Below are positions 15,133-54,430 of a stretch of 64,000 nucleotides of DNA, in pieces. The translations under genes and the position numbers were made by a program. The notes beneath the pieces are model-generated. The model was not told where the DNA came from and did no database searches. It was given only the letters and a program-made list of their open reading frames with translations. The stretch lies in the sequence record LR588166.1, one strand, 5' to 3'. The first letter of the stretch is position 1. Each line of letters starts with the position of its first letter.

Positions 15133-15192
15133 ATATACCCAGTAAATTATAAAATCAGATAAATAATACGATGGCTATTACTGGAGATATAT

Positions 15193-25504: not shown

Positions 25505-25531
25505 TTATAAACTACACAGTTATTTATCTTT

Positions 25532-26009: not shown

Positions 26010-26129
26010 ATACGTTTCTCCTTTTATTAAAGTATTTATCTACGTATATATTTCCTAAGAAGGGAAATAACGCCTTCCCTAGCTAGTGTGCATATTATAT
26101 AACAGCATATTACCGTTGTCAATATATTT

Positions 26130-26555
26130 TTAACTAGTCTTTGTCAGAAGGTAAGTATGTTCATTATTGGTATTTTTGTTTGACTGTATTGTGTAACCAT
26201 ATTGAGTAGCCATTTTTGTTGCGAGTCTATTGTATAATTTAACTCTAGATGGCTCGGATAGATCGGCAGTAAAATATATTTGGTTAGGTTTTAATTCAGA
26301 AATAGCACGTTTGGTAATATCTAATATAGTAGAGAATACTTTAAATTCATTGCCAGTTCCGGTGACAGTAGTATCATAATAATAATCGTCAACATCGACT
26401 TCCTTTGCAGTAAACGATATTAATAGTCTTCCATTAACCATAGTTTCTATGACTCTATATTTCATATTACCAACAATAAAATATGCATTAACGGTTCCAT
26501 TAGTGTTGGTATACTGATATTTTTCAATCTGATCGAATAGTTCAAATAAGTGCAT
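26130..26555 (-). CDS. Hypothetical late protein with an MxLxE-type leader
   Basis: GATAAATA upstream, AAGGA RBS, N-terminus MHLFELFDQIE. Confidence 0.75.
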   Translation of the reverse strand: MHLFELFDQIEKYQYTNTNGTVNAYFIVGNMKYRVIETMVNGRLLISFTAKEVDVDDYYYDTTVTGTGNEFKVFSTILDITKRAISELKPNQIYFTADLSEPSRVKLYNRLATKMATQYGYTIQSNKNTNNEHTYLLTKTS

Positions 26556-26626
26556 AAAAAATAGTCCTTAATATGGATATTTATCTTATATATAAATTAA
26601 AAGGGGAATTAAATTCCCCTTTAGCA

Positions 26627-41883: not shown

Positions 41884-42213
41884 ATGAAAAATATAATTAA
41901 ACATATTTTAGATTTTTATAACGGATTTTCCTATATAGTTCTGTCAAACGTTATATTTCTTTTTAGTTGTATAGTAACTACAGTATTTCTGTGTTATGTG
42001 TCTAAATTAAATAATGTACAAAATTTGGTATCCGACTCGGTTTATACAACTATAGTAGTTTTGTATTGTATTATAGGTCTTCTATGTGGATTAAAAAGTT
42101 GTAAAATAATAGAATTGATAAAACCAGAGAAAAATATTGCAACTACTGTAGGTGTTATAACCGGCATCGCCGTAGTGTTAGTTGCTATGTTGGGATGGAT
42201 ATATGCGGCGTAA
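41884..42213 (+). CDS. Membrane protein (3 TM)
   Basis: Three hydrophobic segments. Confidence 0.65.
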   Translation: MKNIIKHILDFYNGFSYIVLSNVIFLFSCIVTTVFLCYVSKLNNVQNLVSDSVYTTIVVLYCIIGLLCGLKSCKIIELIKPEKNIATTVGVITGIAVVLVAMLGWIYAA

Positions 42214-43630
42214 TAGAAATCTTTCATCTTCTCATAGATTGATATCAAAAGTAGCCGTTAAGATTAAAATTCCCCATATGATGAGCGGGAAATTAAATGG
42301 AGCATTTGATCACTATTTTAGTAAGAATATAATAGCAGAGGATGCTGCTATCTGTAGATGGGCAGGAGATAGCAAATATGCAGGAAGATCGTCGATATAT
42401 TCTGACGATATACCCCGTCAATTAATACGCAACACTGCAGGAAATGTCTCAGGTTGCACATCTTACACTAACAAAGTTATTATGAATTATAAAGAGGATG
42501 CCGGAATGACTCAAGTTAACAGAACCTACACACGTAATAGTAACGATATTGAGTTTTCTCTGGAAGAAGAATTCTCTAATGTCTTTAATGAATCGCCTAT
42601 AAGAAAAACGTGGGTAGCATTTATAGATTGTAACACAAAGGCAGTAGAAGAAGCATTTAAAACTTGCCTAAGTAAAGAATCGTTTGATATAATCTCCAAA
42701 AAATATACAAATATAACATCTTATTCGTCATCTGATGCAGAGCGAGATGCAGACGTTGCATCTGAGGAAATTTGGGTAATAGGAAACGAAAAAGCAGCTA
42801 TTTCTAGAATTACAGATATTTACGATAGTGTACGGTTTATGGTAATTTCTGCAAATGATAGTTGTAATGTAGCTAGGTTTGTAGAAGAATTTGGAAAAGT
42901 ATATGCAAATGCATATCCTAAAGTAAAAGAAGAAAAACCGGAAATTAATATTATTGTGGCCGATTCCCACGGTTATGATTTAGAGTCGTTTGACATGACT
43001 CCTCTGCAAAACATAGATGCCTTTATTGAAGAAAATTATAACGATGATTTTAAAGACACATCTGAATATATAGTAGAAAAAATTATTAGTTCTAGTAAAG
43101 GTATAACACTCCTTCATGGCGAACGAGGAACTGGTAAAACTAATTTCATCCGATACATTGCAAATAAAGCTAAAAAGAAGAAACTCATATATGTTCCTTC
43201 TGATATGGCTCCGGAGTTAGCCAGACCTCAGTTTGTCTCGTTTGTTATGAACCACAAAGATAGTGTGTTTATAGTAGAAGACGCAGAAAATATTCTCCGT
43301 CCTCGGGAAGGCGGCGGCAGTTCAGCAGTGTCTAACCTTCTTAACATGAGTGACGGTATCCTAGGTGATGCTGTTCGGTGTCAGTTTATTTGTACGTTTA
43401 ACTGTAAAATTTCAGAAATTGACAGTGCATTGACTCGTAAAGGTCGGTTAAATGCAGAGTATGAATTTAACAAATTAACAAAAGAAAAATCCCAAAATCT
43501 TTTAGACAAAAAATACGGAACAGGAACATATGTAGCAAAAGGCGAAATGACGCTAGCAGACATTTACAATATGGATAATCCTGACTTTAAAGTCCAACTT
43601 AAGAAACAAAAAATTGGTTTCGGGAACTAA
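42182..43630 (+). CDS. AAA family ATPase (true start probably at 42482 or 42506)
   Basis: LLHGERGTGKT, VFIVEDAE, NLLNMSDG, RKGRL. Confidence 0.88.
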   Translation: MLCWDGYMRRNRNLSSSHRLISKVAVKIKIPHMMSGKLNGAFDHYFSKNIIAEDAAICRWAGDSKYAGRSSIYSDDIPRQLIRNTAGNVSGCTSYTNKVIMNYKEDAGMTQVNRTYTRNSNDIEFSLEEEFSNVFNESPIRKTWVAFIDCNTKAVEEAFKTCLSKESFDIISKKYTNITSYSSSDAERDADVASEEIWVIGNEKAAISRITDIYDSVRFMVISANDSCNVARFVEEFGKVYANAYPKVKEEKPEINIIVADSHGYDLESFDMTPLQNIDAFIEENYNDDFKDTSEYIVEKIISSSKGITLLHGERGTGKTNFIRYIANKAKKKKLIYVPSDMAPELARPQFVSFVMNHKDSVFIVEDAENILRPREGGGSSAVSNLLNMSDGILGDAVRCQFICTFNCKISEIDSALTRKGRLNAEYEFNKLTKEKSQNLLDKKYGTGTYVAKGEMTLADIYNMDNPDFKVQLKKQKIGFGN

Positions 43631-43635
43631 ACAAT

Positions 43636-43899
43636 ATGCGTAGATATTTCATTGCATATTTTTCACTGGTATTCATATTAGCTATATCCGGAATTATATA
43701 TGCGTTGACATATGGATTTATATTTGCCGGAAAAGAAAACTCTCCAGGGTATTCTAATAGTAGGGATAATCTTATTAAAAATATGAATGAATTATTGGAA
43801 CAACAAAAAGCACTAAATTTGGAAATAAAGGAATTAAACAAAGAAATTAATTCTACTAAAACTGAAATATCAACTAAATTACAAAATGTAGACACCTAA
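43636..43899 (+). CDS. TM plus coiled-coil small protein
   Basis: N-terminal TM segment, heptad-like C-terminus. Confidence 0.65.
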   Translation: MRRYFIAYFSLVFILAISGIIYALTYGFIFAGKENSPGYSNSRDNLIKNMNELLEQQKALNLEIKELNKEINSTKTEISTKLQNVDT

Positions 43900-43916
43900 T
43901 AGTAGTTTCTATATAA

Positions 43917-43945
43917 TAAAACAGGAGCATTAGGCTCCTGTTTTA
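43917..43945. terminator. Bidirectional terminator between convergent units
   Basis: AAAACAGGAGC-attag-GCTCCTGTTTT. Confidence 0.8.
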
Positions 43946-44682
43946 TTTTTTGAAATTTTAGTCATTATAGTATTATATAAATCATATGCACGTTTGATTA
44001 TGCGTTTGTATGCTCTGGGGTTTTCATTTTTAAGAAACATAATATAATTTATGTGTGCATTTTCTATAAATGCATTTATAAATTCTTCTTTTGTTAAGAC
44101 AGTTCCTTTTTTGTATAAAAAACTAAATTGATCTACAGTTTGTTCTAAAGCTTGACTTATTCTTGCATTTATTTCGTATGATTGTCTATAATATGTATCT
44201 GAAGATGCCGGATCGTATCTTTTTATTTTTTCATTCTTAAACGGTTGTCCTTTATTTTTATCTAGTGCATGCCTTAACTCATGTACTATAGTTGAAACTA
44301 CACTCTTGTTATTACTAAAAGAATTACCATAATAATGAGTATAAACATATATCGTATTAGATACTAAGTTGTATTCTCCTTTCTTTGCACTGTGTTGTCC
44401 AGAAATGTCAAACACTATCTGAATATCTTTAAATTCATTGTACAAACTATCGAATATATCATCGGGAATTATATTTTTTAAAACAACACTATAGGTATTT
44501 AACATTATTTCTATAGTAGGCCAATCGTAGTTTTTCAACAACAATTGATCTTCTATTTCTTCTCTGTGTTGCTTTAAATTGTTGAAATATGATATAGCGT
44601 TTGCTACACACATTTTTGCAATATTTTGAATAATCAGTTCTTCGTCTGAAGTTTCGATTAAATTAATTTCGTTTAGTCGCAC
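43930..44682 (-). CDS. HExxH zinc-metalloprotease-like protein, paralog B
   Basis: STIVHELRHALD and YEINARI, leader MRLNEINLIE (GTG start). Confidence 0.8.
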   Translation of the reverse strand: MRLNEINLIETSDEELIIQNIAKMCVANAISYFNNLKQHREEIEDQLLLKNYDWPTIEIMLNTYSVVLKNIIPDDIFDSLYNEFKDIQIVFDISGQHSAKKGEYNLVSNTIYVYTHYYGNSFSNNKSVVSTIVHELRHALDKNKGQPFKNEKIKRYDPASSDTYYRQSYEINARISQALEQTVDQFSFLYKKGTVLTKEEFINAFIENAHINYIMFLKNENPRAYKRIIKRAYDLYNTIMTKISKNKTGA

Positions 44683-45352
44683 GATTTTCTGCCCTTTTCT
44701 TTAATGTAACATACAATTCGTAACATCTAGATACTATTCGTTTCCATACTTTTGGATTTTCTTTCTTTAAGTATGTAAGCTGATGACCTTTTGCAAATTT
44801 TTCTATATTATCTAGAAACCATTCTTTGGATGGTATTTCTTTTGAAGATCCCCAATACTGCAAAAATATAACCTTAAGATCATTTAATAATTCGGCTATT
44901 CTTGCATTTATTTCGTATTTTTGATTTAAATATTCTTTATGTTTATCTGAATTGTTTGTATGTTTATATGATAATGGATTACCCTTAGAACTATCTAATG
45001 CATGTTGTAATTCGTGAACTAAGGTATTTGTGTATGTTATATTATTTTTATATGAATCTGGACCTATATCAAAAAGTGCTATGAGATTTTTGCCATCGGT
45101 TCTTTGAATAAAAGCACCGTTGTATTGTTCTGGATGCTCACTTGCATACGGACGTATTATTAAATCGGAAATATTATTTAAAATAGGATACTTATCGAAA
45201 TATTCTTGTTTTATTAAATCTTTTAGTTTGTATGAATTGTATATTTTATTTTCTGCATTCTTTTCTATAACAAACCATATTATTTTTGCAATAGTAGATA
45301 ATATTATACTTTCGCTTGCCTTTTCTGTTAGATTAAATTCTAAAATTTTCAT
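44663..45352 (-). CDS. HExxH zinc-metalloprotease-like protein, paralog A
   Basis: TLVHELQHALD and YEINARI, leader MKILEFNLTE. Confidence 0.8.
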   Translation of the reverse strand: MKILEFNLTEKASESIILSTIAKIIWFVIEKNAENKIYNSYKLKDLIKQEYFDKYPILNNISDLIIRPYASEHPEQYNGAFIQRTDGKNLIALFDIGPDSYKNNITYTNTLVHELQHALDSSKGNPLSYKHTNNSDKHKEYLNQKYEINARIAELLNDLKVIFLQYWGSSKEIPSKEWFLDNIEKFAKGHQLTYLKKENPKVWKRIVSRCYELYVTLKKRAENRATKRN

Positions 45353-45358
45353 TATATC

Positions 45359-45553
45359 CTATCCGTTATGTTTCCAATACTGGATAGATTTTTCTTGTTT
45401 AGAAACCCAGTCTTTAGAAGGTTTTCCTTTACCCTCGTAATATCTAAGGGGCTTCCCTGTCTTTTTAGAAACAAGTGCCCATTTTCCATTTATATGTTTT
45501 AATTCTTCGTCTAATTCTGACGATTCTAGTATGCATATTTCGGAAAGTTTCAT
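45359..45553 (-). CDS. Small late protein with the leader MKLSEICILE
   Basis: First gene after the minus-strand GATAAATA. Confidence 0.75.
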   Translation of the reverse strand: MKLSEICILESSELDEELKHINGKWALVSKKTGKPLRYYEGKGKPSKDWVSKQEKSIQYWKHNG

Positions 45554-45584: not shown

Positions 45585-45610
45585 TATTTATCGCATTATA
45601 TAACTAAATA
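45585..45610. promoter_or_regulatory. Divergent pair of T4-like late promoters
   Basis: GATAAATA on the minus strand (45585-45592) and CTAAATA on the plus strand (45604-45610). Confidence 0.6.
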
Positions 45611-53685: not shown

Positions 53686-54430
53686 CAATATTCTAATATA
53701 ATTGATTGGTATATCTAATCGATGATTCATGTAGTGGATAAATATGGAAGTATAGTTATACCATCTAATATAACGGTGCTGGAAATACAGGCATACACAA
53801 CAGAGTTATTGTATGTAAGAAAATCTCATTGTTTATGTTTATACATTCCTAATATAGGAAATTATGCTTTATGGTTTTTAGACAGATAGGATAAAAATAT
53901 AAATTGTTCTGTTTAAGGAACCAACATTAAATGGCAGGTTGCATATTTAGGCTCGATTTGTCTATTTTTCGTGAAAATGTATATAGTATTTCTAGGTTGT
54001 CTTATACAAAATCTATATGTGTTTCAATAAAAACTAAACCGACAAGCAATAGAAGACAATTAGAAATATATGTTGTAGATAAAACAACTGATTTTTTAAT
54101 TGCATGCAAATATTTTTAGCTTATCTATTATTTTATAAATTGACTTACCTTTAAATAACCATTATATATCTGTTATAATAACTATTCTAAATAGAAATAA
54201 AACCATAAATACACATAATAACGGTGTGGATTTATGGAAAACATATTTAGGATATCTATTAATGCTAACGAAGGTATTATACGAATATCCCCTACTTACT
54301 TTTTTAATGGTGTTTTTTATTCAAAGCATTTGAATATTTTTATAATAGATCCCGACGGATATTTAATAAGAAAAATATATACTTGTAGTACATTCTTATG
54401 ATGATTTCTTTTAAATATACAAAATAGCAT

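Follow-up and report, generated by a model that had tools for sequence, protein, structure and literature searches.

A putative late operon of Pseudomonas phage vB_PaeM_MIJ3 encodes two zincin-like paralogs and a small basic protein that share a T4-like N-terminal leader

A window of 64,000 nucleotides (nt) from sequence record LR588166.1 was analysed, and the analysis concentrated on three tightly packed open reading frames (ORFs) on its minus strand (Table 1). The window is derived from Pseudomonas phage vB_PaeM_MIJ3; a stretch of 3.1 kb around the locus is 100% identical to MIJ3, and 98.7% identical to the sister phage vB_PaeM_PA5oct (record MK797984). PA5oct is the type phage of Wroclawvirus within the Arenbergviridae, which are 285-288-kb jumbo myoviruses of P. 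aeruginosa. The three genes, numbered here from the 5'-end of the operon, encode proteins of 64, 229 and 250 amino acids (aa) that begin with MKLSEICILE, MKILEFNLTE and MRLNEINLIE, respectively. These decapeptides will be called leaders. The genes and their N-termini were found exactly as a preliminary description of this DNA had given them. That description had taken the two larger proteins for paralogous zinc proteases and the leaders for capsid-targeting sequences (CTS) of the kind known from phage T4.

Genes 1 and 2 are separated by 6 nt, and genes 2 and 3 overlap by 20 nt (44663-44682). The GTG start codon of gene 3 is the identical choice in the annotations of MIJ3 and PA5oct, and the orthologue on contig L009 has an ATG at the equivalent place. 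The overlap, the GTG start and the short gap suggest that translation is coupled along the operon. In MIJ3 and PA5oct the operon is situated away from the head genes, amid small non-structural genes and tRNAs, which resembles the situation of the ip and alt genes of T4.

Table 1. Positions of the genes, motifs and further features (window coordinates, unless a contig or PA5oct is named)
Feature	Position	Strand	Remarks
Gene 1	45359..45553	-	64 aa, ATG; MIJ3_00221 / PA5oct gp382; small basic protein
Gene 2	44663..45352	-	229 aa, ATG; zincin-like paralog; MIJ3_00220 / PA5oct gp381
Gene 3	43930..44682	-	250 aa, GTG; zincin-like paralog; MIJ3_00219 / PA5oct gp380
Leader codons 1-10, gene 1 (MKLSEICILE)	45524..45553	-	
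Leader codons 1-10, gene 2 (MKILEFNLTE)	45323..45352	-	
Leader codons 1-10, gene 3 (MRLNEINLIE)	44653..44682	-	overlap with the 3'-end of gene 2, 20 nt
HELQHALD (HExxHxxD), gene 2	44993..45016	-	residues 113-120; H113, E114 and H117 invariant in the family
E-I-N-A-R, gene 2	44900..44914	-	residues 147-151; E147 candidate third metal ligand
HELRHALD (HExxHxxD), gene 3	44260..44283	-	residues 134-141, in predicted helix 125-143
E-I-N-A-R, gene 3	44161..44175	-	residues 170-174; invariant E170 at the start of predicted helix 168-191
GATAAATA, late-type promoter motif	45585..45592	-	39 nt upstream of the gene 1 ATG
Bidirectional terminator hairpin	43915..43947		14-bp stem, dG -19.3 kcal/mol, z -7.65; between the operon and the convergent 87-aa gene
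Further copies of GATAAATA	26578-26585, 26033-26040, 25521-25528	-	
Further copies of GATAAATA	15158-15165, 53737-53744	+	
87-aa gene	43636-43899	+	convergent with the operon
AAA+ ATPase gene	42203-43630	+	
141-aa gene	26130-26555	-	homologue of PA5oct gp349
76-aa family members	L017:16135-16365, L023:9953-10183, L028:15501-15731		
76-aa family members	L033:14259-14489, L036:16589-16819, L045:15633-15863		
PA5oct genes listed with the 76-aa family	gp175 (105688-105900), gp326 (230334-230792)		gp175, a virion protein, is a relative

The leaders follow the strict pattern M-[KR]-h-x-E-h-x-h-x-E, in which h is a hydrophobic residue. In the window this pattern was found at 3 of 946 ORF starts, namely at these three genes. 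The genome-wide search that the preliminary description had proposed as a check gave the same picture, because 3 of the 5666 ORF starts of PA5oct carried the strict pattern and these were again the same three genes. In pairwise comparisons, just 17-19 of the first 30 nt are identical between the genes, which indicates that the similarity is kept at the protein level and which rules out recent gene conversion as its origin. All three leaders have an isoleucine or leucine at position 8 and a glutamate at position 10, and the residue after it is Ser, Lys or Thr. The protein encoded by gene 1 has a second site, L-D-E, at residues 14-16.

The leader is also conserved together with the larger proteins. 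When 1.84 billion representative proteins were searched exhaustively with phmmer, a family of 44 representatives was obtained (E<=1e-3). In 36 of them the protein starts with methionine, a basic and a hydrophobic residue and has an h-x-E ending at positions 7-13; the other 8 seem to be truncated, to be fused or to have a wrong start. Glu10 is invariant in an alignment of 38 of the sequences (about 25% identity), and the leader is ancestral to the zincin family. The T4-like character that had been ascribed to the leaders was borne out; they end in [LI]-x-E. In AlphaFold2 models the mean predicted local distance difference test (pLDDT) value of residues 1-10 was 66 for the 250-aa protein and 52 for the 229-aa protein, and it rose above 90 afterwards. 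In both models the first helix begins at residue 12, so that the leader is predicted to be a flexible extension ahead of it and the putative cut would coincide exactly with the edge of the folded domain.

The relationship of the two larger proteins was evident from BLASTP (E = 4e-21, 28% identity), and they are indeed tandem paralogs with the three blocks in common that had been quoted for them, i.e., HExxHxxD, Y-E-I-N-A-R-I and a C-terminal K-R-I..R. Besides Glu10, the columns H134, E135, H138, E170, A173, R174 and R231 are invariant in the 38-sequence alignment, and M1, L140, D141, Y164 and N172 are nearly so. Both proteins were modelled with high confidence (250 aa: pLDDT 92.0, predicted template modelling (TM) score 0.89; 229 aa: 90.5 and 0.88). 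The predicted topology consists of a three-stranded sheet, a long HExxH helix (residues 100-122 in the gene 2 model), a poorly ordered loop, and a helix that starts with the invariant glutamate. A three-stranded sheet with an HExxH helix and a glutamate helix is the core of zincin-like metallopeptidases, and a clade in phage polyvalent proteins has an aspartate three residues after HExxH (Iyer et al. 2017, PMC5512222), as in HELRHALD.

Weak profile matches point in the same direction, and all are to minimal zincins. They comprise WLM (5jig, E = 0.005), the Pfam families M91 (E = 0.02) and M90 (E = 0.03), both sub-threshold for the window proteins, and, for other members of the family, the 'putative metallopeptidase' DUF6782 (5 of 38, best E = 2.5e-5) and SprT-like (3 of 38), next to M91, M90, M76 and MPTase-PolyVal. 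In BFVD the best structural matches were uncharacterised phage proteins (4.5e-5 to 3e-3), followed up to E 0.1 by polyvalent-protein domains, IrrE-N and SprT-like proteins. Taken together, sequences and models make it probable that the domain is an active metallopeptidase.

The family has a restricted distribution. A word-indexed protein search with the 229-aa protein returned orthologues from the PA5oct group only. A tblastn search with three family members against 50,697 records of cultured phages yielded just 11 records of the PA5oct group, or nothing. A scan of 185,579 species genomes with the DNA pattern of [VIM]HELRHALD gave 69 stretches and no full-length family member; the best of them reached 24 bits and had a different architecture without the leader.

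Apart from the leader, no similarity of the 64-aa protein to the paralogs could be detected, in agreement with the unrelated or diverged bodies that had been noted. No match was obtained in the word-indexed protein search, and its sole detectable orthologue is encoded on contig L009 (71% identity), where the same three-gene arrangement is present. Its predicted isoelectric point is 9.6 after loss of 10 residues and 10.0 after loss of 16 residues. Being small and basic, it recalls the internal proteins of T4.

The next question concerned the presence of the proteins in virions. For PA5oct, purified lysate was extracted with methanol/chloroform and analysed by sodium dodecyl sulfate polyacrylamide gel electrophoresis and ESI-MS/MS (electrospray ionisation tandem mass spectrometry; MS in the following), and 93 virion-associated proteins were reported (PMC7318152). 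In the PA5oct record, gp380 and gp381 carry the label 'structural protein; ESI-MS/MS', as does the product of the divergent neighbouring gene, gp383, and gp382 is unlabelled. The proteomics of MIJ3 covered four major bands only. Presence in virions is thus suggested for the two paralogs of the sister phage, but the 64-aa protein was not detected and the list also includes non-structural enzymes, which are discussed below.

The preliminary description had called the locus a late-promoter operon. This is reasonable in substance, but the exact T4 late consensus TATAAATA is absent upstream of the operon, and the motif found there is the phage's own, GATAAATA, which differs from the T4 late box by one base. 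It was found by inspecting the upstream regions of MS-detected virion genes of PA5oct. The PA5oct genome contains 32 copies, which is below the median of 52 for permuted 8-mers. Of the 32 copies, 17 are located 27-61 nt upstream of MS-detected virion genes in the same orientation, and one more precedes the operon. GATAAATA looks like the late promoter box of PA5oct-type phages. Own sigma factors and an orthologue of T4 gp33 have been reported for gp23-type ('group 2') jumbo phages (PMC7824862). A sigma-70 promoter was rejected, as a consensus scan remained at chance level (17 sites versus 15.3 ± 4.3 expected). In the PA5oct paper, as consulted here, the only promoter motifs reported are sigma-70-like (TATAATA/TTGAC).

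The leader is not confined to the operon. The wider search used a simple ORF model and regular expressions based on the consensus of the family, and all enrichment values given here depend on them. Of 4920 ORF starts of PA5oct, 13 carry the six-residue motif M-[KRH]-[LIVF]-x-[DE]-[LIVMF], and ten of these are annotated gene starts (gp75, gp150, gp175, gp205, gp230, gp238, gp349, gp380, gp381 and gp382). Eight of the ten proteins are MS-positive, compared with a background of 93/445 (hypergeometric P = 8.8e-5, or 3.4e-4 when the paralogs are counted once). One of them is gp150 (MKINDIITE, 73 aa, MS-positive), the gene of which lies between the portal and the protease genes, i.e., at the place of T4 gp67. 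Further MS-positive proteins start with MKILEMAES (gp175), MKLFEVFTLYE (gp205), MRLDEI (gp230), MFLKDVKITE (gp237), MKIKDILVE (gp238) and MHLFELFDQIE (gp349), and the scaffold candidate gp153 starts with MTVKFEHILNE.

The same was seen in distantly related phages. The distant loci comprise 46 IMG/VR loci and two metagenome contigs that encode family members; many are on contigs of 100-520 kb, and several contain sheath, tube and capsid genes of the PA5oct type in the vicinity of the zincin gene. In these 48 loci the motif is present at 48 of 3118 first-start ORFs and at 16 of 7800 internal methionines. The 43 distinct motif proteins form about 19 families, and HExxH is present in one or two of these families only. 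The leader-bearing proteins include 18 zincins, 6 members of a recurrent 76-aa family and many singletons. The possibility that the leader is a peculiarity of the zincin family was ruled out by its presence on many unrelated proteins. The 76-aa family is related to the MS-positive protein gp175 of PA5oct (tblastn E = 6e-7). Leader genes are clustered beside the zincin gene on the contigs L010 (three in a row), L019 (zincin and three others) and L033.

Two side observations concern such leader-bearing genes. In the 76-aa family, the leader is followed by the motifs E-S-x-W-I and H-N-R-P-N, and in uncultured jumbo phages the genes are found a few kb from the zincin gene. At L019:923-9131 and L010:51-2773, three to four consecutive or nearby genes have differing bodies and start with MRL-x-E or M-x-I-x-x-L-L-E. 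These clusters recall the variable internal-protein loci of T-even phages, in which genes with diverse bodies and one common leader are clustered (PMC3012670; PMC9026906).

The head genes of the phage are outside of the 64-kb window and were read in the genome of PA5oct. A T4-type machinery was found. The protein gp152 belongs to Peptidase_S77, the family of T4 gp21 (E = 5e-24), and gp154 matches Gp23 (E = 1e-96). The gene order is portal, 73-aa protein, 270-aa protein, protease, 368-aa coiled-coil protein and capsid protein, which is identical to that of the T4 genes 20, 67, 68, 21, 22 and 23. The tripeptide [LI]-x-E occurs 19 times in the scaffold candidate gp153 (9.1 ± 2.6 in shuffled sequences) and 8 times in the protease (2.6 ± 1.4), and the respective values for T4 are 16 versus 5.7 ± 2.0 (gp22) and 7 versus 2.6 ± 1.4 (gp21). 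The similar enrichment in both phages suggests that the specificity of cleavage has been retained, while the enrichment in the coiled-coil scaffold could in part reflect heptad composition, a point to be counted against this conclusion. The two- to three-fold excess in protease and scaffold is located at L004:35079-36830 in PA5oct and at L126:8449-9927 in T4.

Several experimental results about T4 are of importance for the interpretation. The CTS found on internal proteins of T4 is a leader of about ten residues that is removed by a single cut and can bring foreign proteins into the head (PMC8442874). Residues 4 and 7 are of importance in targeting, and residues 8 and 10 in processing, and an aspartate at position 10 stops cutting but not targeting (PMC9026906). 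The shell protein gp24 loses an N-terminal propeptide of 10-20 residues (PMC5694885), and according to the record annotation it is cut by gp21. As read from the T4 DNA, gp24 begins with MAKINELLRE followed by serine, and gp21, gp22, gp67, gp68 and Alt have an [LI]-x-E that ends at residues 6-10.

Based on these results we favour, with moderate confidence, the interpretation that the locus is a three-gene late operon for head cargo and the counterpart in PA5oct and MIJ3 of the T4 internal-protein/Alt system. The N-terminal propeptide of about ten residues, which can be read directly in the sequences, consists of methionine, a basic, a hydrophobic, any, an acidic and a hydrophobic residue, and ends with [LI]-x-E. 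By analogy with the T4 CTS, it would guide each protein to the scaffolding core within the prohead. The gp21-type serine prohead protease would then cut after the glutamate, just before the first helix, and the mature proteins would remain in the DNA-filled head; the virion MS of the sister phage covers the two large ones. We regard these steps from the propeptide to the retention in the head, taken jointly, as probable. Two of the cargoes would be paralogous metallopeptidases with a gluzincin layout, as suggested by the motifs and the predicted topology. The metal would be bound by the histidine pair of HExxH together with the invariant glutamate of the following helix, and the HExxH glutamate would serve as the base. 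The third cargo, small and very basic, would be reminiscent of the basic T4 internal proteins. Lastly, the cargo may leave the head with the DNA, and host proteins may be cleaved by the zincins ahead of phage gene expression. Of all steps this one has the least support and is purely conjectural, and a host-directed action after ejection is put forward tentatively, as something we think less likely to be true than false. More doubtful still is the extended version, in which the decapeptide is a portable tag that loads varied, fast-evolving cargo into the head and the co-injected zincins cut host proteins that are involved in defence or bound to DNA before expression begins.

The resemblance to T4 is extensive. 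Like IPI, IPII, IPIII and Alt, the three proteins have a leader of about ten residues with Met and Lys/Arg, a central acidic residue, a hydrophobic position 8 and Glu10. Also in T4 the bodies are mutually unrelated and have the leader alone in common, the genes are located away from the head cluster and are preceded by a late-type promoter, which is a putative one here, and one kind of cargo is small and basic (the internal proteins) while others are enzymes (Alt). Furthermore, the prohead protease is of the Peptidase_S77 family in both phages, the scaffold is gp22-like with many [LI]-x-E, and the capsid protein is of the gp23 type. The differences are that the phages studied here are Arenbergviridae jumbo phages of Pseudomonas and uncultured relatives, that in the leader the acidic residue occupies position 5 and position 3 is hydrophobic, and that a whole enzyme family has this leader as a fixed feature. 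In addition, the cargo is a zincin and not an ADP-ribosyltransferase or a nuclease inhibitor, and cleavage, packaging by the leader and ejection are predictions here. The N-terminus of T4 gp24, MAKINELLRE-S, has nearly the same pattern as MRLNEINLIE-T. However, gp24 is a shell protein and not an internal cargo, and the bodies are not homologous.

Two further groups of proteins are comparable. The ejection proteins of phiKZ, 201phi2-1 and SPN3US are located inside the head and are cut after glutamate by a gp21-related protease (PMC5694885), as is predicted here, and they likewise include paralogs with identical N-termini and diverging bodies (PMC5694885). In contrast to the leaders of about ten residues with [LI]-x-E, as in T4, their propeptides are mostly longer than 100 residues and the cleavage motif is (S/A/G)-x-E. 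The zincins of polyvalent proteins and the SprT-like proteins of group 2.2 also have an HExxH helix followed by a glutamate helix after a three-stranded sheet, and those of polyvalent proteins the aspartate three residues after HExxH. Like the proteins studied here, they are restricted to phages, vary in copy number and are predicted to accompany the DNA, with host proteins as possible targets of cleavage; for standalone SprT-like zincins of group 2.2 jumbo phages, host proteins have been proposed as targets (Iyer et al. 2021, PMC7824862). In contrast, the proteins studied here are single-domain proteins of 220-280 aa and not parts of giant multidomain proteins, and they have a T4-type leader that is undescribed for those families; the likeness consists of the predicted fold and of weak profile matches.

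Three alternative explanations have to be weighed against the operon for head cargo, and with the second and third of them belong a number of observations that weigh against our interpretation. A serious rival, to which we give a low probability, is that the zincins are packaged but act inside the particle or during assembly, where they would trim cargo, scaffold fragments or themselves, as accessory peptidases of morphogenesis and not as effectors against the host. In phiKZ-like jumbo phages, a conserved zincin has been suggested to take part in maturation (Iyer et al. 2021, PMC7824862), and autoprocessing by a metallopeptidase has been proposed for packaged polyvalent proteins such as DdrB of P1 (Iyer et al. 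2017, PMC5512222). The zincin gene is found within the structural module or directly after the capsid gene on L046, L022 and L025-L029, but the operon of MIJ3 and PA5oct lies apart from the head genes, and the T4-type protease and scaffold system of the phage is already complete. In addition, the paralogs are duplicated, diverge fast (28%) and were not detected in cultured phages outside of the PA5oct group; duplication, divergence and this restriction fit conflict genes better than core morphogenesis.

The second alternative, which we consider somewhat less likely than the first, is that the decapeptide is not involved in capsid targeting. It might be intrinsic to the enzyme, e.g., an inhibitory pro-segment, it might be a signal for another destination, or it might reflect the start context of late genes, and the detection by MS would then be adventitious. 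The conservation of the leader together with the zincin body throughout the family could indeed be read as that of a part of the enzyme, and the cleavage itself is a prediction. The MS list of PA5oct also includes evident contaminants, namely ribonucleotide reductase, thymidylate synthase, DNA ligase and ClpP, and detection alone is thus no strict proof of packaging. The 'structural protein' label is given at the protein level and says nothing about a cut at Glu10, and it refers to the whole virion, to tail and baseplate as well as to the head. Two motif-bearing proteins, the 64-aa protein gp382 and gp75, are MS-negative, and it is of note for gp382 that a small lysine-rich protein is easily missed by tryptic MS. 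On the other hand, the same leader is present on many unrelated proteins, is enriched among virion proteins, and resembles the N-termini of the gp21 substrates gp24, gp21 and gp22 of T4. Moreover, it ends with the tripeptide that is over-represented in the scaffold and the protease of the phage itself. Its conservation at the protein level in loci of 31-55% G+C speaks against an mRNA-level effect.

The last point concerns the nature of the HExxH domain. Of the zincin site that structure prediction had been expected to show, the models contain the HExxH helix and a following helix with the candidate glutamate ligand, but neither model matched a solved structure at E<=1e-3 when the PDB was searched with Foldseek. 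For the 250-aa protein, the top-ranking PDB entry was the HExxH domain of the alpha-ketoglutarate oxygenase ChlB (E = 0.04, probability 0.97, TM score 0.34), and two gluzincin peptidases were found with weaker matches. No family of Pfam, NCBIfam or PHROG reached the threshold with the window proteins, and the proposed His/His/Glu metal site is read from motifs and predicted topology. That the domain is another metal enzyme, e.g., an HExxH oxygenase, or has a structural, non-catalytic role in the head interior, could be concluded from the ChlB match and the lack of a curated peptidase family, but it is the most improbable of the three alternatives, since the ChlB match is weak and vanishes for the 229-aa paralog, all sequence-profile hints point to zincin peptidases, and the invariance of H, E, H and the downstream Glu, with Asp, Tyr and Asn nearly invariant, at about 25% identity corresponds to a zincin catalytic set and argues for catalysis.

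Some additional observations were made in the neighbourhood and in the virion list. The 87-aa gene that converges with the operon and has the terminator in common with it encodes a protein with a hydrophobic N-terminus and a coiled-coil tail, which weakly matches TssO (E = 0.006) and ATP synthase B' (E = 3.5e-4). Next to it is a gene for an AAA+ ATPase (PF00004, E = 3.8e-9), annotated in MIJ3 as a BCS1-domain protein; one gene separates it from the cargo operon, an adjacency that is perhaps a coincidence. According to a speculation of Iyer et al. 2021 (PMC7824862), BCS1-like ATPases of phages bring proteins into heads in the folded state. Elsewhere in the window, a 141-aa protein without a family match starts with MHLFELFDQIE, like its MS-positive homologue gp349, and has GATAAATA about 30 nt upstream of its gene; it is another candidate for a leader-tagged cargo. 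The virion list of PA5oct contains, as further enzymes, GTP cyclohydrolase, FtsH and RNase H. The enzymes in this list are either carried over from the lysate or many enzymes are present in the capsid, and this colours the label 'structural protein'.

In the searchable literature no paper was found that ties PA5oct-type phages to a capsid-targeting leader or propeptide. As judged from sequence features and genome organisation, the system appears to be of the same kind as the CTS and internal proteins of T4, and the lineage and the zincin cargo are new. Most virion proteins of jumbo phages are functionally obscure, and the majority of the 93 MS-detected proteins of PA5oct are just called 'structural'. 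The leader rule would allow virion proteins to be sorted into shell, core and cargo on the basis of their sequences, and the excess of [LI]-x-E is a cheap signature of gp21-type processing that is usable for spotting scaffolds in other phages.

The T4 paradigm of capsid targeting would thereby be extended to distant Pseudomonas phages, which are candidates for therapy, and to many uncultured relatives. If the zincins are truly packaged, proteolysis would join the activities of the few enzymes that are known or predicted to enter the cell with phage DNA, next to T4 Alt, the N4 virion RNA polymerase and the polyvalent proteins. Packaged zincins would be natural candidates for counter-defence factors. 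If this is true, the phages would have a proteolytic counter-defence that acts prior to gene expression, and the tag could be used for the delivery of proteins into laboratory strains of P. aeruginosa.

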